Positions 1 to 18,400 of a stretch of DNA of 64,000 nucleotides are shown one piece after another. The first letter of the stretch is position 1. Each line of letters begins with the position of its first letter. The notes beneath the pieces were generated by a model, which searched no databases, was not told the origin of the DNA, and saw only the letters and a program-made list of their open reading frames with translations. Both the position numbers and the translations under genes were made by a program. The DNA lies in IMG/VR virus record IMGVR_UViG_3300024350_000252, positions 174,048 through 238,047 of that record. The stretch is one strand, 5' to 3'.

Positions 1-3000
1 GTAACACCGGCAGCACAGATTATTATTTCATCTAGCTATAACGGATCTCCATTGACATTGACTACTGCGTCAGGTTCGATGGGAGTATCAGCTGGTGAAA
101 CTTATTTTGTAGGACAAGCTATTAGATTTAGCGGTACGACATTCGGAAATATACAGACAGGATCAACACCAAAACAAACCTATTGGATCTATTCTGTAGA
201 CGGTCTTAATACTCTAAAGATTTCTACGACACAGTATGGTTCTCCTGTTTCTACTACAGCTACCGGTACTAATGGTCAGTCTACGATCACCGTGACTAGC
301 TTGACTGGTATAGCCTTAGGGTTCCAAGTGACTGGCAATGGTATCGGTAGCGGAGCAACTGTAGTCAGCATAGTAGGCTATGTTGTCACACTCAGTCAAC
401 CTAATACCAGCAATATCACTACAGGAACTGGAGCAATTACATTCAGTTCATATTTTGTACCTCAGACACAGACTGGTTCGATGACTGCTGAAATAGTAGC
501 AGAACCACCAAATGACACATTCTGGGGTAGATTGAATTCAGGCATTAAATGGACTAATTCTTGGGTAACCGACATAGACTATTTCTTAGGTGATGCTGTT
601 CGCTATGGACCAAATAGTTACATCTGTATACAACAACATCATTCATTGACCAGCAACAGACCAGACAATGATGTGACAGGAACTTTCTGGAACTTGTTGG
701 CTAATGGTCAGGAATCATCAGTATTGACCACACAAGGTGATCTAGTTTACTTCGGCGGTTCTGGACCTACAAGATTGCCAATAGGGCAAGATGGTCAAGT
801 GCTGACAGTCAATGGTAATACATTGGCTCCAAATTGGAAGTTCTGGGGCAGCATCGATCAAGTTTATTATGTAGCTACTTCAGGTACAGACAGTGCTTAT
901 CCTATCTATGGTGCTACATTAGACAAACCATGGAAGACTATCAGATATGCTTGCGAACAGATATTAGCAGGACCTAGAAATCCTAATGCTGCTTATCTTA
1001 TAAATGTTAACAGACAGTTCATCCAACGAGAAACTGTAAATTGGATCAACTATCAAATCGCTAACAATATATCTCCTTTCACTACTGGTTTCACTTATGA
1101 TCAAACCAAATGCGAAAGAGATACAGGTTATGTAATCGATGCTTTAGTCTGGGACTTAACACACGGCGGCAATGTGAGATCTAGAGCGGCAGCATTAAGC
1201 TATGTTGGCGGAACATATACTTTATTATCTTCACAGAAAACACAAACCAACGCAGCACTAAATTATGCTATCAATAATGTGTTAGTCGCCGCAGTATTAG
1301 CTAACGCAGCACCTTTCCAAAACTATCAAGTACTAAATGGAGTAGCTGTTGGTTCTCGTATCAATCAAGTTATCAATACAAATTATACTTCAGAAACTGT
1401 ATCATCAGATATTACTGCTTTATTAAAAATAATCACAGATGCTATAACAGCAGGTGTATCTACTAATATTCCTGCTCAGGTACAACCAAATTATACTATC
1501 TTGGCTAAAACTGGAGTATATTATGAAACATTACCTATCGTTGTGCCAGCGTTTACCGCGATAGTAGGAGACGAATTAAGATCTACAAACATACGTCCAG
1601 CTGCTTCGCAAGTAGCTGCTGGTGATGTCACTTACAGTCTAGCAGCATTGGCTTATATCAAGACTATAATCAGCAATGTAGTGACTGGTACCACAGTAAC
1701 TACTAATCAAATCACATATTCACAAGATAAAACACTGCCTTTGGCTACAGGTACTGAAGGAACTACCGTACAGAATCTTGTACAAAATATCATCGACTAT
1801 ATTAATTTCTATATCAATAGCACAGGCAGTGCTCCAGCTATGACTGGTACCAACACACCGGCTAGCACTTACGATCCGTATGCCGCTGCTAGATTGTTAG
1901 AATTGAACAGAAACTTTATCGTAGCTCAAACTAATGCCTATATAGCAGCGACATATCCTGCTTATAGTTACAATGTGGCATCATGTTCTAGGGACGTTAA
2001 TCGTTATATAGATGCTCTTAAATATGATCTAGTCTATACAGGAAATTATAAAACATTAACATACGCAAAACTATATGTCAATGCGGTAACTGGCAGTCTC
2101 TTACAAAATATGTTCTTGGTAAGAAATGCCTGTGGTCTAAGAAATTGTACCGTACAAGGATTGACAGGTACATTAGGATCAGCCAACGCATATGGAACTA
2201 AGAGACCTAGTGCTGGAGCCTATGTCAGCCTAGATCCAGGCTATGGACCAAACGATTCGGATGCTTGGGTAACCACAAGATCTACATATGTACAAAACGT
2301 GACTACATTTGGCACGGCGGCAATCGGTCTTAAGATCGATGGTAATTTACATAACGGTGGCAATAAATCTGTTGTTGCTAACGACTTTACACAGGTCATC
2401 AGCGATGGTATCGGTGTATGGTGTACCAATAATGGGTTGACAGAACTTGTGTCTGTGTTCTCGTATTATGGACACATGGGATACCTAGCAGAAGCTGGTG
2501 GTAAGATACGTGCTACTAACGGTAACTCATCATATGGTGATTACGGTACTGTGTCTGAGGGTGTTGATGCGACAGAAGTTCCGATCACTGCTCAGATTGA
2601 CAATAGAGCATCCGCAGCACAAGTTGGGTTGACAGTACAAAACGGCAATGCTATACAGAGATTAGAATTTACTAATGCTGGTATAAACTATAATAATTCT
2701 GCTACATTTACTTTCAACGGGGCAGGTATTAATGCGGCAGCAGTATTTGACGAAACTAGAGATAATGCTATTTTTGAAGCTAGACAATTACAGTTAGCAG
2801 CAGATGGTTCAGATGGCATGTATGGCGGATCATCATACTATACAGCACAGAACGTTGCCCAGGCGGGCGGTCTATATCAGATCACGCTAGCTGCTACAGA
2901 TAGCCAAACTTCTAGCGGTTATCTGGGAATGAGAATAGTCACTGTATCAGGTACTGGTGCAGCTCAACAGGCTAAGATCATCAACTACAACGCAGGTAAC

Positions 3001-6000
3001 AAGATCGCTCTTGTGGCTAAAGAATCATTCGCAGATATCACAGTTACTGGTAGCACTATCAGTGGTAACACTTTGACTACTACTGCCGCAGAACAAGATA
3101 GATTGTATGCTAACATGCCATTGTATCTTAGCGCAGCTATTGGTGGGTTGAGTGCTAACTCTTTATATTATGTGGTTGGTTCTAGTATCGCTACACCCGG
3201 AACTACTTTCCAAGTTTCAACAGCACCGAGCGGATCTGCTGCTACGATAACAGCTACAACAACAGGACAAAACGTCACATTATATCAAGCAGGTTGGGAA
3301 GGAGCTATCAACGGTACCACTATCACATCACCGGATCCTTCTACATTATATTTGATCGAACCGAGAGTAACATTTGCTGCTCCAGGATTTAAACAAAACG
3401 CTACAGGCACACTACCGACCGTAGCTGTTGGATATAAAGATGGTGTGTTTAGTCAGACAAGATCTACTCATACAGGAGTGTCAGCGAGCGGTGGCGCTGG
3501 TTCAAGCGCAACCTTCAACATTACTAGAGTAGGATTGGTTTATACTGTAACATTAAACAACGGTGGTACGGGCTATGCTGTGGGAAATACTCTAACTATT
3601 TTAGGAACCAGTGTCGACGGTGCTACTCCAAGGAATGACATCACGATAACAGTTACAAAAGTTACAAGTCCTACAGGAGTTATCAGTGCGTTCAGCTCTA
3701 CTGGTTTAGGTAGAGGTGGACAGTTCTTTGCTTTACCAAACAGTGGAGCAACAGGTGCATATTCAAGGGATGGCAGTACATGGACATCTACTACTATCAC
3801 TAACCAATCTTGGGGAACAGTAGCTACTGGTACTATTAGTAACGTGGATTATGTACAAATATTGCCAGGTAGTGGATCGGCTAATTTCCAATACAGCACC
3901 AATGGAGGACAAACGTGGACAAGTTCTACGCTGCCAACTACACAATCATGGACCAGTTCCGCATTTGGTAATGGTGTATTCATGGCAGTGTCCAGCACAT
4001 CTAATACACCTATAACATCATCAAATGGTACGAGCTGGGCTGTTACAGCCGGAAACCTTGGCGCTTTTACTAATTTAGTAGGAGTTGCTTACGGATTGGG
4101 TAGATTTATGGTATTGCCAGGATCAGCAGCTAACACAACAGCATCATACAGTCTCAATAACGGCACTACATTTGTGGCTACGACATTACCTTCCAGCCAG
4201 ACATGGTCTGGTATAGCATATGGTAATGGAAGATTTGTAGCCATAGCGTCAACTAATAGAGCAGGTGCTATCAGCATAGATGGTGTAAACTGGACAGCAG
4301 TAACACTACCGAATGGAACTATGACCAAGATCAGATATGCTCAAGGTCTGTTTATGATGATAACTAGCGGTAGTGCTAATACTGTATGGACATCGCAAGA
4401 TGGTATCAATTGGACTAACAGGACATTTGCTACCAGCGATACGAGAGCATTCCCATTCTTTGGTGATCCAAACAATGTACCAAGCTGGATAGTTCTACCG
4501 TCGAGTGCTACTACTACAGGTATCATAGCAAAAACTGGTGCTACTGCTACAGGCAGAGTTTTAGTAACTAACAACAGTATTTCTCAAACTAGAATCGTTG
4601 AACCTGGTTCGGGATATCCGTTCGGATCTGTAACTAACGTAGGACCTACAACAACTATCACAGTAACCAGCGTATCAGGAACTACTATAACCACTTCAAC
4701 AAACTTGACTACTGCTGGTATACTATCAGATCAACCTATAGTATTCAGCGCAGGATTAGGCAATATCGTCGGCGGCAGTACATATTATGTGTTAACGGCT
4801 AGTGGCACATCGATGACTATTAGCTCTAGCTTACAAGGAACTGCTTTCACTGTAGGCACAGCATCTGGTACTATCACTGGTACTACTGCTAGCGTGATCA
4901 AAGTTGATCAAACTGATAATCTAGTCAATGGTCAACCTGTGAACTTTACCAATTTAGCTGCGGTTGGCTTGTCTACTAATAAAGCATACTATGTGATCAG
5001 CGGTAGTATCACTACTACCAGCTTCAGAGTTTCACAAAATACAGTATCTTCGACAGCGGCAACGCTGACCACACCAGCATCTAGTTTGGTGAATGCTTTT
5101 TATAACGCAGGCGGTGCTATAACTATAACTGATCCGAACCGTGTGTTTGCTGCCCCTATACAAGTAAGAGCTGGATCTAGTGTATTGGCTAATCCTACAT
5201 TTACCAATAGAGGTACTTTATGGACTACAGCTACAACAACAATATCAGGCGACGGTGTTGGAGATATATTCCAACCAGGTCAATATATCTCTATCAAGAA
5301 CATTAGCTCACTGCCAACAGTTGGATCGAATGTGGAATTCGCTTCATTACCGGGACAGTATTTCAAACTAGTTACTACCAGAAACTTGATAGGAACTGGT
5401 CCATATACTGCTACATTCCAGATCAGTCCGTTAATGTCCGTGACAGATTCTCCACCAGATGGCGATGCTATCACTGTAAGAATCAGATATAGCCAAGTGC
5501 GTCTAACTGGACATGATTTTTTGAGCATCGGTACTGGTAACTTTACCAATACAAATTATCCAGGAATACCACTGATCGCTTCTGATTCGGCCAAGCAGAC
5601 CAAAGAGTCCGCCGGAGGTCGCGTGTTCTTTACCAGCACTGACCAAGACGGTAACTTCAACGTTGGTAACTTGTTCTCGGTACAACAGGCTACAGGTACT
5701 GCTACCCTAAATGCTAACGCATTCAATCTAGCAGGACTACAGAGCTTGAGCTTAGGCTCAGTTAACGTGGGAGGTAGCGCAGGCGCTACTATCACTGAAT
5801 TCAGTACAGATCCATATTTCACAGCTAATAGCGATGCTATATTGCCTACTCAACGAGCTATCAAGGCATATGTAGCTTCACAAATTGGTTCTGGATCCAG
5901 TACTTTGAACGTAAATACACTTACTGCTGGTTCGATCTTTGTAAGCGGAAACACCATTACAACCACTACAAACCTCGAAATCAAAGTAACTACAAAATTG

Positions 6001-6057
6001 AATTTCATCAAGGGTGTGGATGGTTATCCAGTGGCCTTGAATTTGTTCTTAACATAA
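1..6057 (+). CDS. Giant tail fibre/virion protein, 5'-truncated: pectin-lyase-like beta-helix, Asp-box propeller and Ig-like repeats
   Basis: Frame 1 is open from base 1, so the TTG at 52 is not the true start. Thr/Gly/Ser-rich. Motifs: YYVATSGTD..GATLDKPWKTIRYAC and KTGVYYETLPIVVP..IVGDELRS (beta-helix); six SxD/NGxxW Asp-boxes; C-terminal SDAILPTQRAIKAYV typical of T4-like structural proteins. Confidence 0.85.
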   Translation, partial: VTPAAQIIISSSYNGSPLTLTTASGSMGVSAGETYFVGQAIRFSGTTFGNIQTGSTPKQTYWIYSVDGLNTLKISTTQYGSPVSTTATGTNGQSTITVTSLTGIALGFQVTGNGIGSGATVVSIVGYVVTLSQPNTSNITTGTGAITFSSYFVPQTQTGSMTAEIVAEPPNDTFWGRLNSGIKWTNSWVTDIDYFLGDAVRYGPNSYICIQQHHSLTSNRPDNDVTGTFWNLLANGQESSVLTTQGDLVYFGGSGPTRLPIGQDGQVLTVNGNTLAPNWKFWGSIDQVYYVATSGTDSAYPIYGATLDKPWKTIRYACEQILAGPRNPNAAYLINVNRQFIQRETVNWINYQIANNISPFTTGFTYDQTKCERDTGYVIDALVWDLTHGGNVRSRAAALSYVGGTYTLLSSQKTQTNAALNYAINNVLVAAVLANAAPFQNYQVLNGVAVGSRINQVINTNYTSETVSSDITALLKIITDAITAGVSTNIPAQVQPNYTILAKTGVYYETLPIVVPAFTAIVGDELRSTNIRPAASQVAAGDVTYSLAALAYIKTIISNVVTGTTVTTNQITYSQDKTLPLATGTEGTTVQNLVQNIIDYINFYINSTGSAPAMTGTNTPASTYDPYAAARLLELNRNFIVAQTNAYIAATYPAYSYNVASCSRDVNRYIDALKYDLVYTGNYKTLTYAKLYVNAVTGSLLQNMFLVRNACGLRNCTVQGLTGTLGSANAYGTKRPSAGAYVSLDPGYGPNDSDAWVTTRSTYVQNVTTFGTAAIGLKIDGNLHNGGNKSVVANDFTQVISDGIGVWCTNNGLTELVSVFSYYGHMGYLAEAGGKIRATNGNSSYGDYGTVSEGVDATEVPITAQIDNRASAAQVGLTVQNGNAIQRLEFTNAGINYNNSATFTFNGAGINAAAVFDETRDNAIFEARQLQLAADGSDGMYGGSSYYTAQNVAQAGGLYQITLAATDSQTSSGYLGMRIVTVSGTGAAQQAKIINYNAGNKIALVAKESFADITVTGSTISGNTLTTTAAEQDRLYANMPLYLSAAIGGLSANSLYYVVGSSIATPGTTFQVSTAPSGSAATITATTTGQNVTLYQAGWEGAINGTTITSPDPSTLYLIEPRVTFAAPGFKQNATGTLPTVAVGYKDGVFSQTRSTHTGVSASGGAGSSATFNITRVGLVYTVTLNNGGTGYAVGNTLTILGTSVDGATPRNDITITVTKVTSPTGVISAFSSTGLGRGGQFFALPNSGATGAYSRDGSTWTSTTITNQSWGTVATGTISNVDYVQILPGSGSANFQYSTNGGQTWTSSTLPTTQSWTSSAFGNGVFMAVSSTSNTPITSSNGTSWAVTAGNLGAFTNLVGVAYGLGRFMVLPGSAANTTASYSLNNGTTFVATTLPSSQTWSGIAYGNGRFVAIASTNRAGAISIDGVNWTAVTLPNGTMTKIRYAQGLFMMITSGSANTVWTSQDGINWTNRTFATSDTRAFPFFGDPNNVPSWIVLPSSATTTGIIAKTGATATGRVLVTNNSISQTRIVEPGSGYPFGSVTNVGPTTTITVTSVSGTTITTSTNLTTAGILSDQPIVFSAGLGNIVGGSTYYVLTASGTSMTISSSLQGTAFTVGTASGTITGTTASVIKVDQTDNLVNGQPVNFTNLAAVGLSTNKAYYVISGSITTTSFRVSQNTVSSTAATLTTPASSLVNAFYNAGGAITITDPNRVFAAPIQVRAGSSVLANPTFTNRGTLWTTATTTISGDGVGDIFQPGQYISIKNISSLPTVGSNVEFASLPGQYFKLVTTRNLIGTGPYTATFQISPLMSVTDSPPDGDAITVRIRYSQVRLTGHDFLSIGTGNFTNTNYPGIPLIASDSAKQTKESAGGRVFFTSTDQDGNFNVGNLFSVQQATGTATLNANAFNLAGLQSLSLGSVNVGGSAGATITEFSTDPYFTANSDAILPTQRAIKAYVASQIGSGSSTLNVNTLTAGSIFVSGNTITTTTNLEIKVTTKLNFIKGVDGYPVALNLFLT

Positions 6058-6070
6058 CGGAGAAAAATAA

Positions 6071-6394
6071 ATGGCAACAGGAGTTTTGGGCACATACGAT
6101 CATACCGCAGGAGCTTGGTTTGCTCTATATACGGTCCCAGCCACTACATTTTCGGTGGTCAGCTTGTCAATGTGTAACAGAAGCAATCAAGCTGTGAACG
6201 TAAGAGTAGCAGTTTCTACAAGTTCAGTTAGCCCTGCTAACGGCGAAATCATCGAATTTGATACAGAAGTATTAGGAAAAGGTGTGCTAGAAAGGACCGG
6301 TATCGTGATGGATGCCGGTAAAGTGCTTCTAGTTTACTCAAATGCTGCGGGCGTTAGCTCGGTAGCATTTGGAATCGAAACATCAACTGTATAA
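6071..6394 (+). CDS. Small virion structural protein (107 aa)
   Basis: SD GGAG; beta-rich LYTVPATTFSVVSLSMCNR..EIIEFDTEV pattern seen beside T4-like fibre genes. Confidence 0.65.
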   Translation: MATGVLGTYDHTAGAWFALYTVPATTFSVVSLSMCNRSNQAVNVRVAVSTSSVSPANGEIIEFDTEVLGKGVLERTGIVMDAGKVLLVYSNAAGVSSVAFGIETSTV

Positions 6395-6420
6395 TAAATA
6401 TAGCATCAGGGGAATAAACA

Positions 6421-6753
6421 ATGGGAAGATATCTTACAACTACAGGAACAGCAGGCAATACGGTCAGAGAGATCTCAGGAGCCTACTCTGCAGTAGTCAA
6501 CGACAGAATTTTAGCTAATACTGCTAGTAGCGGTTTTACTATAACACTGCCTGCTAACAGCACATTATTTTTGAATGATACTATTCAGATCATTGACGTA
6601 GCAGGAAACGCAGCTATTAACAACATCACTATCGCTAGAAACAGCTCTAAGATCAACAATATCGCAGACGATTTCGTGATTGACGTTAACTATGCTGTGA
6701 TCACGTTGATCTATACAGGATCAACATATGGTTGGATCGTAGCCAACGCTTAA
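6421..6753 (+). CDS. Tail-fibre-associated protein (T4 gp34-like module, 110 aa)
   Basis: FTITLPAN..DTIQIIDVAGNAAINNITIARN..ITLIYTGSTYGW motif; ATAAATA late promoter at 6394-6400. Confidence 0.7.
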   Translation: MGRYLTTTGTAGNTVREISGAYSAVVNDRILANTASSGFTITLPANSTLFLNDTIQIIDVAGNAAINNITIARNSSKINNIADDFVIDVNYAVITLIYTGSTYGWIVANA

Positions 6754-6771
6754 TGAAGGATAAAGACGGGT

Positions 6772-7743
6772 ATGCCAACCTCGCTTAAAGCAACTAACGG
6801 TTTTAAAAGTCAGGCTTTCTGGAATCAGGAAACTAATCTAGAAAGAGGGACTATACATGTTTACACCCCAGGTAACGACTTCCAAAGTTTCCCCTGCTGC
6901 GGATGTTTCGTCGCACCTAGCTGTGGTACAGCAGTCATAGAAATCTGGGGAGCTGGCGGAAGCGGTTCTCGTATGTGCTGCTGTGGTGGCGGCATGCCAG
7001 GAAATTCAGGTGCCTATGCCAAAAAGACTATCAGAATGGGCGCAGGCTGTTATATCTATTTCTATGTAGGCATGGCCTGCGGTAACGCAGACTCTTTATG
7101 TTATAGAGGCTGTTCAGAAGCTACCTGTCTATGTTGGTTTGGTAACCAAGGACTTAGTGGCTGTATGTGCGCACAAGGTGGACAGGGCGGTATCAGTTAC
7201 TGTTCTACAGGTACTTCTATGTACTGCTGCTATGCGGCCAATAGTTGGCCAACTACAAACTTAGGCAATGGTTGCGGAATCGTCTGTAATAATTGCTCAG
7301 GATCATATCAAGCATGTGCCTACGGTGGAGACGTTAACCTCTGTAGTAGGATTTCCTGCGTGGTCTATCTAGGCTGCTTGCCCAGCTGCGTATGTAACAT
7401 CAATTGGAGCATGGCTATCCCCGCAGGACAATTTTCAAAATGCGGAGGCTATGTCAGCTACACGACAGAAAATAACCAAGACTACGCTAACTGGGTCGGT
7501 GTAGGACAACATAATCATATCATGGCACTGAATGCTGCCAGTCGTTGGCCACAACAGGGTATGCCATGGGCATACTGCTGGGGGTTTGGCGGTGGTTGCG
7601 GCTGTTACGAAAACGAAGGCTGTACAGGATTTGTTCCACCAGGACATCCTGGAATGGGACCGCTTCCATGTCCAGATGTGAGAGATCATGCTAGAAAAGG
7701 CGGCAGTGGCATGGTAAGAATTAAATTTATACCGGGAACATAA
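6772..7743 (+). CDS. Cys/Gly-rich adhesin-like protein, paralogue 1
   Basis: EIWGAGGSG..GNSGAYAKK and terminal GGSGMVRIKF, a glycine-rich phage adhesin frame; about 33 Cys in 323 aa. Confidence 0.7.
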   Translation: MPTSLKATNGFKSQAFWNQETNLERGTIHVYTPGNDFQSFPCCGCFVAPSCGTAVIEIWGAGGSGSRMCCCGGGMPGNSGAYAKKTIRMGAGCYIYFYVGMACGNADSLCYRGCSEATCLCWFGNQGLSGCMCAQGGQGGISYCSTGTSMYCCYAANSWPTTNLGNGCGIVCNNCSGSYQACAYGGDVNLCSRISCVVYLGCLPSCVCNINWSMAIPAGQFSKCGGYVSYTTENNQDYANWVGVGQHNHIMALNAASRWPQQGMPWAYCWGFGGGCGCYENEGCTGFVPPGHPGMGPLPCPDVRDHARKGGSGMVRIKFIPGT

Positions 7744-7744
7744 G

Positions 7745-8725
7745 ATGCCAACTTCGATTAGAACATGGACACAAACTAGACTAAACTTCATCGCAGATAA
7801 TGAAGAAAACTTAGAACGAGGTTCGATCTATCTGTTCAGCGGTTCTGCTGAAAGAACGAATTTTAGTAACGGTGGTTTTTGCTGGGTAGCACCTGCTACC
7901 GGACAGGCTATCGTAGACATTTGGGGAGCTGGTGGTAGCGGTGCTCGTATGTGCTGCTGCGGTGGCGGTCTTCCGGGCAATCCAGGAGCATTTGCTAGAA
8001 AATGTCTATGTATACAGTCTGGCTGCTGGATCTGCGGATTTACTGGTATGAGCTGCGGCTCACCAGATCTTTGCTTTAGAGGTTGTTCGGAATATTCAGG
8101 TATCTGCTGGCAAGCTAGCGGTACAAACGGTTGTGTATGCGCCCAAGGTGGCCGCGGAGGCACTAGCTACTGTTCTACAGGAACTTCTCTCTATTGCTGT
8201 TTTACAGCTGGTAACTTCTGTACTACACTAATCAACGCTAACTGTGGTGTTGTCTGTAACTATGGTTCAGGCACAGCCAGCTGCTGCGCACAAGCATTCG
8301 GTGGCGACATTAACTGTTTTGGCGGTTTTAGTTGTGTACTTTTCGCAGGTTGTCAACCAAGTTGTCCATGTTCAACAATCTATCACATAGCTACACCTCC
8401 ATACTATTATTCAACATGCGGTGGAGTGATCACTTACACCTCTGAAGGTGATAGCGGAGCAGCTAACTGGTCGGGCGGTACATTGACAGGATACATACAC
8501 GGTATGTCAGTCATGGGTCGTCAACCACATCACGGTACACCTCCAGAGCAATCTTGCTGGACTGGCGGTCGTACATGCGGATGTTACGAAGGTCAAGGAT
8601 GTATTCCTTTTGTACCAGCAGGATTCCCAGGACCTGGTCCTTTGCCTTGCCCAGATGTTCGCGATATGGCATTCCGTGGCGGTCATGGTGCTGTAAGAAT
8701 CAAATTCATAGCCGCAACAGAATAA
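7745..8725 (+). CDS. Cys/Gly-rich adhesin-like protein, paralogue 2
   Basis: Same motifs as paralogue 1 (WGAGGSGARMCCCGGG, CSTGTSLYCC, PCPDVRD, GGHGAVRIKF); about 33 Cys. Confidence 0.7.
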   Translation: MPTSIRTWTQTRLNFIADNEENLERGSIYLFSGSAERTNFSNGGFCWVAPATGQAIVDIWGAGGSGARMCCCGGGLPGNPGAFARKCLCIQSGCWICGFTGMSCGSPDLCFRGCSEYSGICWQASGTNGCVCAQGGRGGTSYCSTGTSLYCCFTAGNFCTTLINANCGVVCNYGSGTASCCAQAFGGDINCFGGFSCVLFAGCQPSCPCSTIYHIATPPYYYSTCGGVITYTSEGDSGAANWSGGTLTGYIHGMSVMGRQPHHGTPPEQSCWTGGRTCGCYEGQGCIPFVPAGFPGPGPLPCPDVRDMAFRGGHGAVRIKFIAATE

Positions 8726-8737
8726 GGTGAAATAAGA

Positions 8738-9721
8738 ATGGCACAATCGCTTAATAGCTTAGTAAGATTAAAAACTCCAGATAGGAATGAAGATAACCTT
8801 GAATTAGGCCAGATCTTTGTGTTCAGTCCTGGCACCATGTATACCAACTTCTGTTATAACGGTGGTTCTGGTTTCTGTTGGAAAGCTCCAGGAACAGGTA
8901 CAGCAGTTATCGAAATGTGGGGAGCTGGTGGTAGCGGTGCTAAGATGTGCTGCTGCGGCGGCGGAACTCCAGGAAATGCAGGTGCTTATGTAAGAAAAAC
9001 TATTTCGGTTAACTCTAGCACATATGTTTGCGGTTGTACCGGATTTTCCTGTGGTAACTCAGACTCATTATGCTATAGAGGTTGCTCAGATCCTTCGGGA
9101 TTAAACTGGGTGAATGGTACTGGTGCGATAGGAGCTACCAGTGGCTGCTTATGTGCCCAAGGTGGTAACGGTGGCCTTAGCTGGTGTTCTACAGGTACTT
9201 CTATGTATTGTTGTATGGGGGCTAGCGGATGGTGTACCACTTATCTAGGTACAGGTTGCGGTGTGGTCTGTAATTACTGTAATGGTATGTGGATTGCCTG
9301 CGGGTTTGGTGGAGACATTAACTGCTGCGGTCGATTCAGCTGTATTACCTATTATGGTTGTCTACCTAGCTGTATTTGTTTGTTCCAATATCATATTGCT
9401 GTACCGGCTAATTTCTTCTCATGCGGTTGCGGTAGTATGGCTAATTTCACAACAGAAAATGATAATAGGCATTCTAACTGGTCAGGCCAAGGTGTTAACC
9501 AACAGATGAACGCATTAGGAGCATTGAGTAGATCGCCGAGACAAGGTATTCCGCAAAGCTACTGCTGGCGTTCAGATCGTAAGTGTGGATGTTATAATAT
9601 GCAGGGCTGTATGAACTATAACCCACCTGGTGTGGGCGGTGTCGGACCAGCTCCGTGCCCAGACGTCCGCGATCACGCTATGCGTGGTGGAATGGGCGCA
9701 GTGCGTATTAGATTCTTTTGA
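8738..9721 (+). CDS. Cys/Gly-rich adhesin-like protein, paralogue 3
   Basis: WGAGGSGAKMCCCGGG, CSTGTSMYCC, PCPDVRD, GGMGAVRIRF; about 33 Cys. Confidence 0.7.
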   Translation: MAQSLNSLVRLKTPDRNEDNLELGQIFVFSPGTMYTNFCYNGGSGFCWKAPGTGTAVIEMWGAGGSGAKMCCCGGGTPGNAGAYVRKTISVNSSTYVCGCTGFSCGNSDSLCYRGCSDPSGLNWVNGTGAIGATSGCLCAQGGNGGLSWCSTGTSMYCCMGASGWCTTYLGTGCGVVCNYCNGMWIACGFGGDINCCGRFSCITYYGCLPSCICLFQYHIAVPANFFSCGCGSMANFTTENDNRHSNWSGQGVNQQMNALGALSRSPRQGIPQSYCWRSDRKCGCYNMQGCMNYNPPGVGGVGPAPCPDVRDHAMRGGMGAVRIRFF

Positions 9722-9742: not shown

Positions 9743-10393
9743 ATGAGAAAGTTATTTCAAATTACATTGCCCGACGAACCATACAAAACAGCCACTACTA
9801 AAAATCAAAAAGTAGACTGTATGTATGTGGGCCCACGATATATGGTACTTTGTATCGATAATACTACTGATTTAGTAAAATATGTAGGTAGACGTGCTGA
9901 CACGATCGAAGAAGCAGAATTAGATAATCACGTAGAAGATGATCATTATCATGTTTTGCTAGATGCTTCTGTGAATACATTTGAAGCAGCATATCTTACA
10001 GGACAGTACGAACACGGTGAGATAGAGAATTATACCGAAACGTTACCTACAAAAAACGCAGCAGGTGAGTTCGAAACTTATACATATCACTATGATGATT
10101 ACAGAGGTATTATAGGACAGATTTATTGGAATCAGGTTCTTTATTACAATCCTTCAAATAAAACTTTCAAAGAACCCGCAAGAAGAGAACATGCTACTGA
10201 CTGGGATCAAGTAGTAAAAACTACTAAAGATGGGGCTGCTGAAATACGTAAAATGTTAGAAGCTAATGATTATTTTCCAGCTCAATTAGCAGTTATCAAT
10301 GAATATCTAGATTGGGTTGATACTTTTGAAGAAAAGTATGCTGATGTAGATCATTGGAAAGTTCCATTTCCACCATATCCAAACATGGCTTAA
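9743..10393 (+). CDS. Hypothetical protein, possible tail-fibre assembly chaperone
   Basis: Acidic 216 aa directly after the adhesin triplet; C-terminal HWKVPFPPYP resembles the W..P end of fibre chaperones; GATAAATA at 9720-9727 and SD GAGG. Confidence 0.5.
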   Translation: MRKLFQITLPDEPYKTATTKNQKVDCMYVGPRYMVLCIDNTTDLVKYVGRRADTIEEAELDNHVEDDHYHVLLDASVNTFEAAYLTGQYEHGEIENYTETLPTKNAAGEFETYTYHYDDYRGIIGQIYWNQVLYYNPSNKTFKEPARREHATDWDQVVKTTKDGAAEIRKMLEANDYFPAQLAVINEYLDWVDTFEEKYADVDHWKVPFPPYPNMA

Positions 10394-10474
10394 TTTAGTC
10401 TGGACCAGATCTAGGTCGACTGTTACCGTATAGCTAATATATAGTAGCACTCGACCTATATTCTTGGAGACTAA

Positions 10475-11431
10475 ATGGAACAGCAACAACCAACACAGCG
10501 ATCAAAAGCCTTTTTCTTAAATGGCGGCGCTGGCAGAGTTCTATGCTCTATCCCGGCATTAGAAAAATACGAAGAAGAATCAGGGGATAAAGATTTCATC
10601 ATAGTGTGCGAAGGTGGTACGGAAGTGTTCAAAGGACATCCTACACTAGACAGCAGAACATATGACAATTGGCACAAGAATCTTTTTGTAGAAAAAATCA
10701 AAGATCGCGATTGTGTAACACCCGAGCCTTATAGAGTTTGGGAATATTACAATCAAAAATGCGATCTAGCACAGGCATTTGATATCGAAATCAATAGAAA
10801 AGGCATTAGAGAATTACCTAAACCTAATCTAAGATTGAGCAAAGACGAATTGTTAGTAGGTAGACAGCTAATCGCCGACGTCAAGAAAAAAATCAAGAAA
10901 GAAAAAATCATAGTTTTCCAACCATTTGGCCGAGGCATAGACTATGTCGATGGTTCTTTTGTAGATCGTACTAACAGAAGCTTTGAATTTAAAGATGTAA
11001 AATCAATCATACGAAAACTTCAAGAAGCCAATTACGGTGTCGTAATGATGGGAGAAATGCGGCTCGATCTTACCAGCGAAAAACTAAAAGATGATGTAGC
11101 AGCACCAGAAAACACTACCATAAGACAGTGGGCAGCTATCATCAAATACGCAGATCATTTCTTGGGCTGTGACAGTGTGGGTCAACACCTAGCCTATATC
11201 GTAGGCAAACAATCTACTGTAGTATTCGGATCTACATATCCAGTTAACGTGTCTTACCCTAATTGTAAGTACATGAATCTTCTAGATATGGCTGAAGAAA
11301 TAAGAGAATATAGTCCTATCAGGATTACACTAGACGAACGTATTGATAGAAAACTAGAAGGAGTTATGTCCATGACTCCGGAAATTGTTGATTATGTAGT
11401 GAATGCTGTTTTAGGGAAGAAACAAAAATGA
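10475..11431 (+). CDS. GT9-like (heptosyltransferase-type, GT-B fold) glycosyltransferase
   Basis: N-terminal NGGAGRVLCSIPAL and C-terminal AAIIKYADHFLGCDSVGQHLA..STVVFGST match the GT9 pattern. Confidence 0.7.
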   Translation: MEQQQPTQRSKAFFLNGGAGRVLCSIPALEKYEEESGDKDFIIVCEGGTEVFKGHPTLDSRTYDNWHKNLFVEKIKDRDCVTPEPYRVWEYYNQKCDLAQAFDIEINRKGIRELPKPNLRLSKDELLVGRQLIADVKKKIKKEKIIVFQPFGRGIDYVDGSFVDRTNRSFEFKDVKSIIRKLQEANYGVVMMGEMRLDLTSEKLKDDVAAPENTTIRQWAAIIKYADHFLGCDSVGQHLAYIVGKQSTVVFGSTYPVNVSYPNCKYMNLLDMAEEIREYSPIRITLDERIDRKLEGVMSMTPEIVDYVVNAVLGKKQK

Positions 11432-13242
11432 GTGAAAGCAAGAATCCAATGTTAAACACTGGCTGGATCGCAGCCATAGCTAGAGGTCATAATTCAGGTA
11501 TCTGTCTATTCAAAGACGGAGAGATCGTTTTTTCTGCTGAAGAAGAAAGATTTACCAGACAGAAATACGACGGCGGTCCGTATGCTTCGATGATGAAAAT
11601 CAAAGAATACACAGACAAAATCGATTATCTAGTAGTAGCACACACACAAAAATTAAATGAAACTGCGGGTCGTGTTGACTATTCTGGTGATGATGTATAC
11701 ACAGGATTAGCTCGTAAGATGAATCTTATTGATCGAAAAGCTGATTTACATAATCATCCTCAAGTAATTGACCTTAGTTTTATGCATCATAAGCTACACG
11801 CTGCTTGTGCGTTTTATCGTTCGGGATTTGATGATGCTGTAGCATTGATTGTAGATGGTGCCGGTACTTTCATCCAGATGTCTTATGCTAACCAACCTAT
11901 ATGGGTATGGGAAGTAGAAAGTATCGTAGACTGTTCATATCCATCAAAGTTCAAAACTTTGTACAAGCATTATGGTACTAGAGAGCCTATTGCTGGTGCT
12001 ATCGAAACTAGCATTCCGTCTGATCAGTACGGTGAAGTAAATGATTTTCATGCTGCCGTATTATCAGACAGAGCAGGTATCGTTAAGACTTACGAAGCAG
12101 TCACAGAATATTGTGGGTTCAGTGCTATCGAAGCAGGCAAGACTATGGGATTGTTCCCATACGGACAGAAAAACGATAAGATTCCTCCATTGTTTGATTT
12201 TACATCTAAGGTACCCTTATCAAACAGAAATGTTATAGTTCCAGCATATCCTTCGTCTGCTAGAGTCAACGCACAACTATTTGATTATTTGGACGAAGAA
12301 ATTCCAGAAGGAGTAGATCCTACTAAATTACAAAGTCGTAGAGATTTGGCTTATGCTTGTCAAACACAGACTCAAGACCAAGTAGTGAGATTGATACGAA
12401 AAGCTGTAGAAATTAGCGGCAAGAAGAAAGTAGTGATCAGCGGTGGCTATGGTCTTAACTGTGTGGCCAATTATCATTATCTAGAAGCATTGAAAGACGG
12501 GGGTATCGAAATTTATGTAGAACCTATCTCTAACGATGCCGGAACAGCTATGGGAGCAGGACTGATGTTTTGGCATGCCATGACTGACAACACAGACATA
12601 CAGAAACTAGATACCCTTTACCTCGGACCTAAGTACGAATATACACAGGAAGAAATTGCGGAAAAGGTCAAGTACGCAGGTGGCGAGTTGACAGACGCTA
12701 CCAATGAACAAGTAGTAGAACTGCTACGTTCTAAGAATATCGTGACGATCTTCCAAGGTAGATCAGAAAACGGTCCGAGGGCCCTAGGCAATAGAAGTGT
12801 TTTATTTGATCCTACATTTCCAGATGGAAAGGATTTTGTAAACACTGTCAAACGTCGAGAATATTTCCGTCCTTTTGCGGGCAGCATTATACATGATGTT
12901 GTACATGATTGGTTTGATCTGCGCGGCATGGATGAAAGTCCTCACATGATGTATGCTGTAAACTGTAAGCCCGGAATCGCAGAAAAGATACCCAGCATCA
13001 TACACGTAGACGGTACCTGTAGAATACAGACTGTAAAACGTGAGCAAAATCCTCATTATTATGATTTGATCAAGGCTTTTTATACAGCTACAGGAATTCC
13101 TATCCTGTTTAATACCAGCTTTAATTTGGGCGGTGATCCGCTAGTAGAAACACTAGATGATGCTATAGATACCTTGATACGCAGCGATATAGAGTATCTG
13201 TACCTGCCAGAATACGGCAAACTGATCAAAATAGCCAACTGA
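11428..13242 (+). CDS. Carbamoyltransferase, NodU/CmcH/TobZ family (full length, Kae1-like plus YrdC-like domains)
   Basis: EEERFTR, HHKLHAACAF, VDGAG, GKTMGL, GGYGLNCVAN, NDAGTAMGA, GPRALGNRS, KRREYFRPFA, HVDGTCRIQTV, NTSFN; ATGA overlap with the GT gene. Confidence 0.95.
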   Translation: MSESKNPMLNTGWIAAIARGHNSGICLFKDGEIVFSAEEERFTRQKYDGGPYASMMKIKEYTDKIDYLVVAHTQKLNETAGRVDYSGDDVYTGLARKMNLIDRKADLHNHPQVIDLSFMHHKLHAACAFYRSGFDDAVALIVDGAGTFIQMSYANQPIWVWEVESIVDCSYPSKFKTLYKHYGTREPIAGAIETSIPSDQYGEVNDFHAAVLSDRAGIVKTYEAVTEYCGFSAIEAGKTMGLFPYGQKNDKIPPLFDFTSKVPLSNRNVIVPAYPSSARVNAQLFDYLDEEIPEGVDPTKLQSRRDLAYACQTQTQDQVVRLIRKAVEISGKKKVVISGGYGLNCVANYHYLEALKDGGIEIYVEPISNDAGTAMGAGLMFWHAMTDNTDIQKLDTLYLGPKYEYTQEEIAEKVKYAGGELTDATNEQVVELLRSKNIVTIFQGRSENGPRALGNRSVLFDPTFPDGKDFVNTVKRREYFRPFAGSIIHDVVHDWFDLRGMDESPHMMYAVNCKPGIAEKIPSIIHVDGTCRIQTVKREQNPHYYDLIKAFYTATGIPILFNTSFNLGGDPLVETLDDAIDTLIRSDIEYLYLPEYGKLIKIAN

Positions 13243-13267
13243 AAAAAGCCCCGCAAGGGGCTTTTTT
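13242..13267. terminator. Bidirectional rho-independent terminator
   Basis: AAAAAAGCCCC-GCAA-GGGGCTTTTTT. Confidence 0.9.
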
Positions 13268-13311
13268 ATTATGTCCGAAATCAGTTAAATACATAATACA
13301 AGAGAGTGACC

Positions 13312-14859
13312 ATGACTGATTTCAACAAGTTTTTTAACATAGACGTAAAGAACACATTAGGGTTAAAAAACGGGGTGAACTTTAACTATAAAGGGCCCTG
13401 GGTACAGGTCTATGAAAATACAGAACTAGATCGTTGGTATGTTGGTGATTTTGCCAGCGCCAATTATCATATTTCTATCGAATTCAACTCTAACAAAAAA
13501 GAAACATTATCAGTTTTAGTAGTTGCCCGCCCAGGGTATGCCAACTATACAGTTTACGGGCGTGTGGCTATCGACGATGAATTAGTTGATATATCTGCGG
13601 TGGTTAATAATAACCATCTATCTTTGATATTGAATCCAAAAGTAGCAGCATACAAAGGTATGCGAGCAATATTTACAGCCACATATGCTGGTACGTTGAC
13701 CGCACTATCTATACCTGCTACCCCGACATTTTTAGTCCCAGATACTAGTCCAAATTCAGGCAGCGGAACTCCTGGTACCGGCAGTTCGGCTATAGATCTA
13801 ACCAGCATCACTACAGATGTAGTACCTTTAGATACCGGAGTTAAAGACCTAGGCAAAACAGGAAAACGCTGGAGAGATCTTTTCATCAGCGGAAATTTAA
13901 ACATCAATGGCGCTATCATTGGTGCTTCTAACAATGCTGTCGATTTACCAACAGGTAGCACTATCGGCGGATCTACGTTAAAATCTTTTTCTACGGTTTC
14001 GGTAGCAGGACAAAACAGTATAACAACTTCTTTAGTAGGTGACAGTTTTACTATAGCAGCAGGAACTGGTATTTCTTTAACCACCGATTCTATTAATAAA
14101 GTATTAACTATAACCAACACAGGATCCGGCAGCAGCAGTGGTGGAACTACAGTTTCTGCGTCAGGTTTTGGCATCATAGCGGTTTCTGGACAGAACAATG
14201 TGTTGGCTACTAGATCGACAGACTCAGTACAGTTCATAGCCGGTAGTGGTATGACTATTACCACTAACCCTACGAACAAAACGATAACTTTTGTGTCATC
14301 GGGCGGAAGTGGTGGCAGTGGCGGAACAGCAACACAGGCCATAATCAATGAAATCACGACAGGTGAATATCCGATGGTGCTAGCTGCCGGTATCGATCCT
14401 TTGTCTGGCAAGGCTCTTTATGCTAACACAAACTATAAGCTCAATATCGATACCGGCGTATTAAGTGTATCGTCTACTAGTTCTCGATGGGCAGACTTAG
14501 CAGAAAATTATCTAGCTGATCGAGACTATGCTCCGGGTACCGTTGTAGAATTTGGTGGACAATTAGAAATTACCCAAGCTGGCGTAGTATCAAAAAAGAT
14601 AGCAGGAATCATATCAACTAGACCGGCACACCTCATGAATGGAGAATTGAAAGGCGAGTATGTAAAACCTGTAGCACTAGCAGGAAGAGTTCCGTGTAAA
14701 GTAACAGGTAAGGTTAAAAAAGGTGACATGATGGTCAGTGCCGGGGGCGGAAAAGCCAAGGCATCTTCTAATCCCGAAATAGGCTCAGTTATCGGAAAAG
14801 CATTAGAAGATTTTGATGGGGTTGACGGTACGATAGAAGTCGTAGTCGGTAGAATTTGA
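13312..14859 (+). CDS. Tail fibre/spike protein with C-terminal Peptidase-G2-like intramolecular chaperone domain
   Basis: WADLAENY..PGTVVEFGG..AGIIST.PAHLMN..VALAGRVPCKVTG..IGKALEDF; two SGQN..DSxxFxAGxGxxxTT repeats; ATG at 13312 preferred over GTG at 13306. Confidence 0.8.
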   Translation: MTDFNKFFNIDVKNTLGLKNGVNFNYKGPWVQVYENTELDRWYVGDFASANYHISIEFNSNKKETLSVLVVARPGYANYTVYGRVAIDDELVDISAVVNNNHLSLILNPKVAAYKGMRAIFTATYAGTLTALSIPATPTFLVPDTSPNSGSGTPGTGSSAIDLTSITTDVVPLDTGVKDLGKTGKRWRDLFISGNLNINGAIIGASNNAVDLPTGSTIGGSTLKSFSTVSVAGQNSITTSLVGDSFTIAAGTGISLTTDSINKVLTITNTGSGSSSGGTTVSASGFGIIAVSGQNNVLATRSTDSVQFIAGSGMTITTNPTNKTITFVSSGGSGGSGGTATQAIINEITTGEYPMVLAAGIDPLSGKALYANTNYKLNIDTGVLSVSSTSSRWADLAENYLADRDYAPGTVVEFGGQLEITQAGVVSKKIAGIISTRPAHLMNGELKGEYVKPVALAGRVPCKVTGKVKKGDMMVSAGGGKAKASSNPEIGSVIGKALEDFDGVDGTIEVVVGRI

Positions 14860-14889
14860 TCAAATAAATATAGGGCTAGCGGGTAAAAA

Positions 14890-15438
14890 ATGACTACAAA
14901 CAGCAAAAGATTAAGCTCAGATTATGGATTTAAAAGTCCTGGATTTTCTGTAGATTCAAACGGAAACATCACCGGTACCAGTTTAGGTATAAAAGGTGTA
15001 AGTATCATCGATAGCACAGGAGCATTGACATCCAACGTCAAAATTACTTCTATCGAAGTCCTGGGATCTTTACAAAATCTCGATGTCAATGGCAATGTAA
15101 ACATACGTAATGGCAGTGTTTCTAGACTGTCAGTTAACGCAGGAAGAGTAGTGATCAAAAGTGGTACTACTGGCACTATCGACAATATGAATATCGGTAC
15201 TATAACACCTGGAACAGTATCAACATATAATCTCAGTATAGTCAATAATGGCTCTAGTCCAGGTAATCTCAATGTCAGTGGCGCAGATATAGTAGCTAAT
15301 AATGCTACAATTTCGGGTAATATAATTGCCACAGGCTATATCTTGTTAGCCAATAGTCCAACCGCAGCCACTCACGCAGTTAGAAAAGACTATGTGGATT
15401 CTAGCGCGATTACATACGCAGTAGCTTTTGGAGCATAA
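14890..15438 (+). CDS. Fibre-like virion protein (182 aa)
   Basis: C-terminal PTAATHAVRKDYVD fibre motif; ATAAATA at 14864-14870. Confidence 0.65.
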   Translation: MTTNSKRLSSDYGFKSPGFSVDSNGNITGTSLGIKGVSIIDSTGALTSNVKITSIEVLGSLQNLDVNGNVNIRNGSVSRLSVNAGRVVIKSGTTGTIDNMNIGTITPGTVSTYNLSIVNNGSSPGNLNVSGADIVANNATISGNIIATGYILLANSPTAATHAVRKDYVDSSAITYAVAFGA

Positions 15439-15445
15439 GTAAAAG

Positions 15446-18400
15446 ATGGCAAAGAAAAAAATAGACAACTATGTGTTTAGACCGGGTATAGGCTATAACA
15501 GCTATCTATATCCCAATGCTTATGCTTCTCTAAATAACAACTTAAATTTTATACAGGCAGAAGTAACAGCATACTTAGACTACAAAATAGCTCAAGACAC
15601 TGCGGTCAATTTGCTGCCTAATGCTGTAGCACTATTGACTAATAATAGACTTTGGTTAGCCAATGAAATAACAGCCTATATCGCATATAATGTTAGTCAA
15701 GGTACTCCAGGGTTTACTGGTCGAACTTATGATGCTGCTAAATGTACCAGCGACGTATCTAAAGTTATTACCGCATATATAAACGATTTACGATATGGCG
15801 GAAATGAAAATACTATAACGGCTATTTCATATTATTGGGTAGGTTCTGTTCCGCAGATTGCCGGCACAAGATTTTTAGAAATAGCAGGATATACCTATCT
15901 AAAATCTCTGATAGCTAATTATGTGTTTACAAGAACAGCACCTCCCACAGTCTATCAATCAGGAACAGGTCTGACCCAAAACACATCAGGCTCAAATGCT
16001 GAATCATCAGCGGTAACTAAGATGAATGTTCTAACACAGAACACTATCGATGTTATTACTAGCGGATTGGGCAGCTTGCCGGCTACACAGTTAAAGACAG
16101 CTACATTTGCCAACTATACCTATGATTCTCAGTTGTGTATCAGAGATTTAAATTTTGTATTAAATGCCTATCTACATGATATACGTTACGGCGGCAATGA
16201 ACAGACTGTCTATGTTGTAGGATTTTACTGGAACGGTACAGTTGCGCAAGTTAACGGAAGTAGACAACCGGAAATACAAGCACACACCTATGTCTATCAA
16301 TTGATAGCCAATTATATTATTAAAAATCTTCAGACACCTACGCCTTATCAAGGTATAGTACCGCAGGTTATCGTACCGTCGTTGACATACGAAAGTGCGG
16401 CTGGCGCACAAGTCACTTATCTAGGTTCTACACTAGTTTCGGTTATTGCTAATGGGTTGTCTTCTTTACCGTCTATAATTCCAGCTACTAATGGACAGTT
16501 AAAAATACAAGGTAATTACACCTTAAGTGATTTCCTATTAATTACTAATACAACCACTAACACCATTATCTATAACTTTACTAATCCTGCCAACGGCGGT
16601 GTTATAGTTACTAACAGTTCAGAATTTTCTGATCCTATGGTTAACAGTGGCGGCAACTTCCCCGATAATCCTATCACAGATAGTGATTTCCCTCAGTTTA
16701 GGCAGATAACAGATACAGTAACATTCATAGAATTTATATCAGATACTTCATCTATGAGCAGCACAGACAGTCTACAGATATTTGTAGAAGTGCCAGAGCT
16801 TACTGTAAGGCCATACGATTTTGGAACTGATGCTATCGAGCGTATGCGTGTGGCTACACCACAGTCCATGCTTGACGCTGACTTTGAATACGGACTTCAG
16901 CCTACCAAGTGGCAAGCTATAGCTATGGCTAGAGGATACCCTAGCATATACGAAATTCCTGGAACAGATCAGAATCTAATTTCTATTATAACTGATGCTT
17001 CAACAGGCACCAGTGGTGTAGGTGGCAGTCTTATCACTGTTACCACTGCTAGCAATCACGGATTTAGCACAGGACAACCTATAACAGTGAGAGGTCTAGA
17101 TCCTTCTGTGTTTGGTTTTGCTAGAGCAGAAGGTAGTTATATCATCACGGCTGTACCAACGACAAAAAGTTTTTCATATTATGCCAAAGCAAAAGTAGGT
17201 ACTGTTGCCAGCACATCGTTATTAACAACCTATACTAGTGTAAGACAGGGTGGGTTTTTTACCGGAGCTGAAATAGGTACGCCATCTTTTACTGTGCTCA
17301 GCAACGGATCTACAGGTACTGTTACTACAGTATTTGCGACCAATTCTGGCAGTAACAGGTTTGCGTTCACTACCGCAGGTGCTCCATCTATTGGTGCTCC
17401 AATCTCCGGAACTGGTATTCCTACAGGATCACAGATAACCAGTATCGTGGGTTCAGGTGGAGTTATTGTTACTCCTATATTAACTTCAGATTATCTAGCA
17501 GGAGTTTCGGAAATAGATGTTGCTAGTACAGCAAACATTCTCATCGGTGAAGCAGTAAACAATGGTGTAGGCACAGCTATATTTGTCACAGCAATCAACA
17601 ATAATACTTTGACATTCAGCGCACCTTTCCAGGCACCTTTAATAGGAAATACAGTGACTTATTCTACTGTATCAGGCACTAATATTGTTGGAACAGGTAA
17701 TGGTGCTACTTTCAATGTGACTAGGAATTCTACAGTTGATTATACTGTAGCTGTCAACGCAGCCGGTACTGGTTATGCTGTTGGAGATACTATAAAAATC
17801 CTCGGCAGCAATGTAGGTGGAGTCACACCAGTCCACGATTTCTATGTCACTGTTTCTGGATTATCTGGCAGCGGTATACTAACAGTAAACATAACCGGAG
17901 GAGTTGCTAATCCTATTGATAACCAAACTATTTCGGCAGATAACACTGTCTATACGACTGCTAGCACCGGAACTAATGCTGTATTTTCAGTGACACGCGG
18001 AGTATCAGCTTACACCGTTAACATCACCAATGGTGGCAGTGGCTATAGTATCAATGAAACTTTTACAATCTTAGGAACAGCATTTACCTTTGGTGCTACG
18101 ACTGCCAATGATGTTACTATAACAGTAGTAGATGTTTCTGCGTCATACACGGGTGTCAGTGGTACAGTTTCACCAGCAGGTGGTAATGGAGCTACTTTCA
18201 ATGTTACTAGAGTAAACGCAGTCTATACATTGGTCACCTTGGTTAATCCTGGAACTAACTATTCTCTAGGCGATACTATCACTATATTAGGAACAGATCT
18301 AGGTGGTACTACCACGACTAACGATCTTACCATATCAGTGTCAGGAATTGGTGTCACAGGTAATGTGGCGTCATTTACGTTCTCAGGTACAGCCGGCGGG

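Follow-up and report, generated by a model that had tools for sequence, protein, structure and literature searches.

Phycobiliproteins (Pfam family PF00502) carry bilins at a site where Cys84 provides the thioether linkage, a propionate is bound by Arg86 and the pyrrole nitrogens by Asp87. The Lys, Cys, Arg and Asp residues of this site are contacts to the chromophore and not determinants of the fold. ApcE, the core-membrane linker, attaches its bilin without a lyase; this attachment is autocatalytic, and thus a lyase-free route exists. In this study we analysed a stretch of 64,000 nucleotides (the window), the last 64 kb of the 238,047-bp IMG/VR record IMGVR_UViG_3300024350_000252, which is estimated to be 67% complete and belongs to a jumbo phage from river water. 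Two giant virion proteins encoded in the window, the tail-fibre protein P0001 and the virion structural protein P0002, contain copies of a helical module with a conserved cysteine motif, which we compared with phycobiliproteins.

An initial annotation of the window had reported four such motifs and proposed a globin- or phycobiliprotein-like module that may bind a tetrapyrrole or be a structural relic of that fold. All four motif cysteines (codons 1111, 1984, 15743 and 16136) are present, and the proteins are poor in cysteine, as had been noted: P0002 has four in 2172 amino acids and the window part of P0001 seven in 2018, with two in each protein lying within motifs. The motif is not uniform, with C-x-R-D at 1111, 1984 and 16136 and Ser in place of Arg at 15743 (C-x-S-D). 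Nor is every copy of full length, since the first copy of P0002 is complete and the second copy of each protein is shortened. Our conclusion, held with high confidence as far as fold and homology are concerned, is that the module is a divergent branch of the phycobiliprotein family and a repeated building block of giant virion proteins associated with tail fibres or the baseplate.

Sequence relation to phycobiliproteins

Relatives were collected by a word-based search with residues 60-340 of P0002, which found 215 giant proteins of 1.2-3.8 thousand amino acids and from which 120 relatives were retrieved. Three relatives carried a precomputed label for PF00502 (Phycobilisome), and a rescan confirmed it. 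On a copy in relative P0021 the family profile scored 31.1 bits (E 2.7e-7; profile positions 33-152 of 155) and on a copy in relative P0028 24.9 bits; the curated gathering cut-off is 22.2 bits. Both matched stretches hold C-x-R-D. When 59 non-redundant copies were scanned singly, PF00502 was found in seven (best E 8e-5), and every other Pfam family in at most one copy. A direct Pfam scan of P0001 and P0002 assigned no domain at the motif region. Judged by sequence under the Pfam rule, the window copies are not members of PF00502 and some sister copies are, and membership is at the level of the superfamily and of the repeat family taken together.

We also compared profiles of the module with sequences of known structure. 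When all PDB sequences were searched with a profile built from the 59 copies (A1), phycocyanin alpha chains came first (best E 0.0048) and made up most of the list, next to a few unrelated weak rows. This profile aligned the phage K-C-x-R-D on the K-C-x-R-D around Cys84 of phycocyanin alpha. With a profile of orthologues of the P0002 N-terminus (A2), all 16 PDB matches at E ≤1 were phycocyanin alpha chains. Both P0002 copies aligned to residues 34-104 of phycocyanin alpha (copy 1 to 38-104; profile positions 182-250 to 34-104). Comparison by hhalign with CpcA/CpcB of the Acaryochloris plasmid pREB3 gave a probability of 82% in the same register (C-x-R-D on Cys84), with a confident part of only 26 columns. 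The module thus retains Lys-Cys-x-Arg-Asp in the phycobiliprotein register, and the profile comparison that the initial annotation had called for placed the phage Cys on Cys84. The helix preceding the motif has the pattern A-x-x-L-x-x-N, as in phycobiliproteins. A tblastn search with a Pfam-positive copy against plasmids gave no phycobiliprotein match.

Predicted structure

AlphaFold2 models were computed from phage-only alignments and with no templates. The model of P0002 residues 1-345 had a mean predicted local distance difference test (pLDDT) score of 93.2 and a predicted template modelling score of 0.84, and the core of the P0001 copy 1 model had a pLDDT of 86-96. We aligned the P0002 model exhaustively to 48,161 PDB representatives using VIA-align. 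All top eight rows were phycobiliproteins (Z 13.7 to 11.5), namely phycoerythrin beta [5aqd_M, Z 13.7; 155 of 184 residues aligned, model 35-205 on chain 14-184], allophycocyanin [8or7_A, Z 13.2; 137 residues aligned], the bilin-binding domain of ApcE [4xxi_A, Z 13.1; root-mean-square deviation (rmsd) 2.2 Å over 114 residues] and five more phycobiliprotein or ApcE rows (Z 12.4-11.5). Globin-coupled sensors, pXO2-61, RsbR and photocobilins followed at a Z of about 11-9.5. VIA-align gave the same order for P0001 copy 1, over a Z of 10.9-9 (allophycocyanin 10.9, ApcE bilin domain 10.5, photocobilin 10.2). In Foldseek, the top lists for both models consisted nearly entirely of phycobiliproteins, mostly with probabilities of 0.9-1.0; for P0001 copy 1 every top hit was one. 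A search of the ESM Atlas with the P0002 model found a C-phycoerythrin beta cluster (template modelling score 0.65 by target, rmsd 3.1 Å); an ESM Atlas search by sequence features yielded no usable match.

The AlphaFold2 model shows a globin-like fold with the extra N-terminal helix pair (X, Y), and the motif Cys stands at the start of a long helix (P0002 residues 97-117), as Cys84 does on helix E. In the same model, the second copy of P0002 forms four helices (228-248, 252-261, 274-291 and 317-336) after the final helix of domain 1. The initial annotation had named a plain coiled bundle without relation to globins as the outcome that would speak against its proposal. No such bundle was seen; structure prediction and fold search gave a globin fold with phycobiliproteins as the best matches. 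The fold inference is supported because four independent lines agree, that is, predicted structure, fold searches, Pfam (PF00502 on sister copies) and profile searches. We therefore consider the fold of the module and its homology to phycobiliproteins very probable.

The nearest predicted-structure cluster in the ESM Atlas was viral (60 members, 572 amino acids, Pfam Mtd_N and DUF1565, a beta-helix family) and aligned to residues 55-277 of the model. Judged from these models, shorter phage proteins may combine the helical module with a beta-helix.

The repeat family and its conservation

A repeat hidden Markov model (HMM) was built only from 42 copies in three unrelated metagenomic giant proteins. 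It recognised six of the six copies of the river phage (E 1e-16 to 1e-37), which are distributed over three proteins: P0001, P0002 and a third giant open reading frame (ORF) outside the window. A six-frame scan of the whole record found the motif confined to the giant ORFs. The strict core pattern occurred three times in the six frames of the window, compared with 0.005 matches expected from residue-shuffled frames. In P0001 copy 2, which is shortened C-terminally, the HMM covers only positions 4-111 of 170. Among the 120 giant relatives the module is ~130-160 amino acids long and is present in 2-19 copies per protein, with a commonest spacing of ~160 amino acids. A related-locus search with one protein found 13 viral contigs, most of them short.

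Conservation was determined from 382 near-complete copies, with positions counted from the Cys. Lys occupies position -1 in 72% of the copies, Cys position 0 in 93%, Arg position +2 in 92% and Asp position +3 in 96%; further on, Asp is found at +9 in 87% and at +14 in 100%, and a Y-G-G-N turn at +17 to +20 in about 71-88% per residue. By alignment register and by the conservation of its three residues (93, 92 and 96%), the module has the Cys84/Arg86/Asp87 site, with Ser for Arg in one window copy. Arg and Asp were kept in 348 of the 355 copies that have the Cys. In the 27 copies without it, which have Trp, Phe, Tyr, Ile, Leu or Ala instead, Arg was kept in only three. The nominal Fisher p for this joint loss is 1e-28; the copies form a handful of orthologous groups, so few independent events underlie it. 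Bulky residues in place of the Cys would be expected if a cofactor pocket were filled in.

The proximal-His pattern of heme globins was not found, as His is absent from all columns conserved at ≥50% in the 382 copies. A heme globin was rejected on this ground. A disulfide role for the motif Cys was likewise rejected; there is one conserved Cys per repeat, and virions are assembled in the cytoplasm.

Both giant proteins belong to the tail-fibre or virion proteins by their PHROGs matches, by their neighbourhood of tail genes and by their homologues in cyanomyoviruses, for which the annotation reads tail fiber or virion structural protein. P0001 matched the tail fiber families phrog_9851 (E 1e-106) and phrog_5342 (E 8e-13; residues 326-437, corresponding to copy 1). 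In a tblastn search, the core of P0002 (residues 420-1600) was 45-49% identical to a virion structural protein of the T4-like cyanomyoviruses S-CAM1 and S-CAM3, and 111 of the 118 matching phage records were cyanophages.

Two further observations on P0001 were made by eye. A beta-helix-like stretch follows copy 2 (~2100-2700), and approximately six regularly spaced S-x-D-G-x-x-W (Asp-box/BNR-like) motifs lie at residues ~1180-1420 (window ~3540-4260). Such a series of motifs is suggestive of a distal beta-propeller.

Distribution among cyanophages and relation to cpeT

We searched 50,697 phage records with a six-repeat query and obtained 133 matches (Synechococcus 91, Cyanophage 37, Prochlorococcus 4, Marine virus 1). 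All but one are named as cyanophages; the remaining one is named 'Marine virus', and we count all 133 as cyanophages. The genes in which the repeat lies carry the annotation tail fiber, short tail fiber, baseplate wedge initiator or virion structural protein; the tail fiber protein S-PM2p091 (3338 amino acids), for example, contains five to six copies. In 17 cyanomyovirus genomes, the repeat HMM gave 3-12 matches in each of 14, always within ORFs of 2924-7312 amino acids, among them nine in S-PM2 (two ORFs), 12 in S-RSM4 and 3-7 in eleven others. No match was obtained in P-SSM2, S-SM2 and S-SSM7.

CpeT (PF06206) is encoded by 12 of these 17 cyanomyoviruses. All 12 have the repeat, and none of the three repeat-less genomes encodes CpeT (Fisher p 0.015). 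In S-PM2 and Syn1, a giant repeat-bearing 'short tail fiber protein' gene has cpeT 0.7-1.5 kb upstream of it on the same strand, and coordinates indicate the same gene order in S-RSM4. Sullivan et al. (2010, PMC3037559) called the role of phage cpeT unresolved.

Cyanophages S-PM2, P-HM1 and P-HM2 strictly require light for adsorption, irrespective of photosynthesis, and P-SSM2 adsorbs in the dark (PMC6628666). Among these four phages, the only ones compared, the first three have 5-9 copies of the module each and P-SSM2 has none. The light dependence was ascribed only to 'host receptors and/or tail fibers' (PMC6628666).

In the RefSeq record of S-PM2 (NC_006820, 165928-177267), 16 tRNA features are placed inside the coding sequence of a 3779-amino-acid 'short tail fiber protein', although the frame is open. 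This placement looks like an annotation or coordinate error in the record.

Genome context

Features of the window and the third giant ORF are listed in Table 1. The genes for tail sheath, tail tube, large terminase and helicase are located downstream of the giant fibre genes. Terminase and sheath are nearest to those of PA5oct, Atu_ph07 and Phosso, which are jumbo phages of Proteobacteria (45-55% identity), and the genes for fibre and virion structural proteins are closest to their counterparts in marine T4-like cyanomyoviruses. The phage is thus a mosaic. Window DNA was also found in at least 24 riverine metagenome runs. A second record, IMGVR_UViG_3300024496_000013 (150,707 bp), encodes the P0002 N-terminus with 100% identity over 345 amino acids and may help to complete the genome.

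Table 1. Positions of the giant genes, their module copies and two packaging and tail genes (window coordinates unless marked otherwise)
Feature	Position	Strand	Properties
Giant tail-fibre protein P0001	1..6057	+	C-terminal 2018 amino acids of a 2560-amino-acid ORF that starts upstream of the window; two module copies
P0001 copy 1, phycobiliprotein-like globin module	982..1329	+	C-x-R-D, Cys codon 1111-1113; repeat HMM E 1.2e-29
P0001 copy 2, phycobiliprotein-like module	1765..2091	+	C-x-R-D, Cys codon 1984-1986; repeat HMM E 1.9e-22
Giant virion structural protein P0002	15446..21964	+	2172 amino acids; phrog_5838 virion structural protein, E 1e-248; two N-terminal module copies
P0002 complete phycobiliprotein-like domain, residues 35-209	15548..16072	+	C-x-S-D, Cys codon 15743-15745; AlphaFold2 mean pLDDT 93.2
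P0002 shortened second copy, residues 210-345	16073..16480	+	C-x-R-D, Cys codon 16136-16138; repeat HMM E 2.7e-16, model positions 63-159
Tail sheath	29831-33229		
Large terminase	37583-39172		
Third giant ORF (outside the window)	record 36657-44207	+	2516 amino acids; Cys at 38922 and 39351; repeat HMM E 6e-37 and 2e-27

Ten ORFs lie between the two giant genes of the window, including those for a carbamoyltransferase, a GT9-like protein and three paralogues of unknown function. The paralogues are encoded in tandem directly after the first giant fibre gene (6772-9721), are 323-327 amino acids long and all belong to phrog_4205 (unknown function); they may be fibre accessory or receptor-binding proteins. 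Sugar-modification genes are situated amid the fibre genes at 10475-13242 and 22004-23278. Their products are a GT9 (heptosyltransferase)-like protein, a carbamoyltransferase of the NodU/CmcH type (Pfam E 2e-56) and a third protein, which matches heptose kinase/adenylyltransferase in its C-terminal part. Carbamoyltransferase has been listed as enriched in cyanophages and absent from non-cyanophage T4-like phages (Sullivan et al. 2010, PMC3037559).

Discussion

We propose that the Cys/Arg/Asp triad is kept because the module would still bind a linear tetrapyrrole at the motif Cys, with the fibres chromophorylated. The infected cell would be the source of the bilin. Attachment would be autocatalytic, as in ApcE, or would depend on a lyase, for which the orphan phage cpeT is a candidate in cyanomyoviruses. 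Its most likely use would be to sense light at the fibre, with adsorption gated by light, and not to harvest light. We assign a probability of about 0.5 to this explanation as a whole, a fibre module of the phycobiliprotein branch that binds bilin. For the module family, we put the chances of bilin binding at roughly even; for the river phage itself they would be slightly worse, and the virions of this phage and its relatives may carry a light-absorbing bilin pigment. It is rather unlikely, though consistent with the adsorption phenotypes, that bilin-bearing phycobiliprotein-like arrays on the fibres of many cyanomyoviruses and related aquatic jumbo phages form a virion photoreceptor that gates adsorption. 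If this were true, phage cpeT, ho1, pebS and pcyA would at least partly serve to chromophorylate the virion rather than the host antenna.

Indirect evidence for a bilin comes from the conserved residues, which are those that contact the chromophore in phycobiliproteins, from the joint loss of Cys and Arg, from the restriction of the module to cyanophages among the phage records searched, from its co-occurrence with cpeT and proximity to it, and from the light-dependent adsorption of the few phages compared. Several of our results weigh against this explanation. PF00502 gave no match to the window copies themselves, whether it was run on the proteins (E ≤0.1), on the genome (E ≤10) or on the four copies singly. 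By the calibration of VIA-align itself, a Z of about 13 lies at the borderline for helical folds, and the Foldseek E-values are weak (about 0.1-0.6). Asp(+14) and Y-G-G-N, the most conserved residues of the module, are without equivalent in phycobiliproteins, and part of the module's conservation therefore serves something else. The host of the river phage may be devoid of phycobilins, because the packaging and sheath genes are nearest to those of PA5oct and Atu_ph07; moreover, the module is absent from PA5oct, a relative in its backbone genes. Heme oxygenase, bilin reductase (ferredoxin-dependent bilin reductase, FDBR), CpeT, psbA/psbD, hli and CP12 were not found in the 238-kb record, which at ~67% completeness is weak evidence of absence, and no lyase or pigment gene is among the ten ORFs between the two giant genes. 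The co-occurrence with cpeT and the correlation with adsorption involve few lineages, which are not independent. T-type lyases normally serve the Cys153 site and not Cys84 (echoed in PMC10452541). Finally, we found no report of pigmented purified cyanophage fibres.

The module might instead be a structural relic. A phycobiliprotein domain, probably captured from a cyanobacterial host, would now be a chromophore-free, rigid helical bead of the fibre shaft, and its Cys, Arg and Asp would serve packing or contacts between repeats or chains. We regard this as possible, at clearly less than even odds. The strong invariants of its own that the module has (Asp(+14) at 100%, Y-G-G-N at about 86%) are foreign to phycobiliproteins, its long tandem arrays in fibre proteins are typical of structural repeats, the record lacks bilin and lyase genes, and Ser has already replaced Arg in one window copy. 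A purely structural role, however, does not readily account for the site itself. The roles of Arg86 and Asp87 in phycobiliproteins are established as ligand-specific and not structural, and a lone Cys conserved at 93% in Cys-poor proteins that are assembled in the cytoplasm is hard to ascribe to packing. Cys and Arg are moreover lost jointly, with bulky aromatics in place of the Cys, and the module co-occurs with cpeT and adjoins it.

The ligand might also be a different one, such as heme, biliverdin from the heme oxygenase of a heterotroph, a metal or a molecule of the host surface, and the module a receptor-binding or redox-sensing unit. Such a role would agree with the phage backbone, which is like that of phages of heterotrophs, and with the structural matches that come next after phycobiliproteins: heme-binding globin-coupled sensors and non-heme RsbR-type globins (Z 9-11), and photocobilins (Z about 10), which are bilin-binding globins of non-photosynthetic Actinomycetota. 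We nevertheless consider it improbable, given that conservation falls on the residues of the bilin site of phycobiliproteins and not on those of heme globins, that no proximal-His pattern exists in the columns conserved at ≥50%, and that among cultured phages the module is confined to cyanophages.

Convergence or over-reading, in which one helix of an ordinary helical bundle resembles the E helix and draws AlphaFold and the aligners to phycobiliproteins, is very improbable: the hhalign signal (probability 82%) does lie within 26 columns, the PDB profile E-values are marginal (0.005-0.02) and the background Z for helical folds is high, but PF00502 spans 120 of 155 positions above its curated cut-off in a sister copy, the structural alignments extend over 114-155 residues including the N-terminal helix pair (core rmsd 2.2-3 Å), no other globin ranks as high as phycobiliproteins in either of two different search programs or in the ESM Atlas, and the models are template-free and come from phage-only alignments.

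Bilin binding by a phycobiliprotein-like fibre module would turn two questions, the light-dependent adsorption of cyanophages and the role of phage cpeT, into ones with testable candidates. Were the pigment absent, a light-harvesting domain of the host would still have been recruited as a structural bead of the virion. In either case, hundreds of giant phage proteins labelled 'hypothetical' would gain a domain annotation.

Comparison with known systems

The module is most likely a homologue of phycobiliproteins (phycocyanin, allophycocyanin, phycoerythrin alpha and beta). It shares with them the globin-like fold with the N-terminal helix pair and the (K)-C-x-R-D at the start of the long E helix. 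Phycobiliproteins are free subunits of 160-170 amino acids that pair as alpha-beta heterodimers in the trimeric or hexameric discs of the phycobilisome, whereas the phage module occurs as 2-19 tandem copies in virion proteins of 1.2-7.3 thousand amino acids, in the setting of the tail fibre; it has its own Asp(+14) and Y-G-G-N, and is known here from sequence and models.

The closest architectural analogue is ApcE, in which a phycobiliprotein-like domain is likewise part of a very large multi-domain protein. ApcE differs in having one such domain, followed by linker (REP) domains, in the location of its attachment Cys, which is elsewhere, and in being a cellular antenna protein.

In use, the closest analogue would be the bilin-binding globins outside antennae, that is, photocobilins (8j2y, 8j2w) and the bilin biosynthesis-associated globins (BBAGs; Rockwell et al. 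2023, PMC10151467). Like the phage module, they belong to a distant phycobiliprotein lineage; they occur in non-photosynthetic organisms and serve sensing, not harvesting, and they match the module structurally at a Z of about 10. In contrast to it, they are cellular, either as single-domain proteins or in fusions with B12 or regulatory domains, and no viral one is reported; in the paper by Rockwell et al. (2023, PMC10151467), phages come up only for the enzymes PcyX, PebS and heme oxygenase.

The same repeat is found in the giant fibre proteins of T4-like cyanomyoviruses (S-PM2p091; T4-GC 734, 'short tail fiber protein' of S-PM2, Syn1 and S-RSM4), for which the annotations and literature that we searched give no domain assignment of the repeat. 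Unlike the cyanomyoviruses, the phage studied here is a river jumbo phage with packaging and sheath genes of the PA5oct/Atu_ph07 type and without cyanophage marker genes. The full-text literature that we searched describes no phycobiliprotein- or globin-like domain in phage fibres, which is not proof of novelty. What would be new here is the occurrence of a known fold and site in virion fibres, as tandem arrays and possibly in a new role. Phycobiliproteins have been known as antenna subunits of cyanobacteria and algae and lately as bilin sensors in some bacteria, and our searches turned up no account of viral ones; our findings add them, as a very probable relative, to the common repeats of phage tail fibres.

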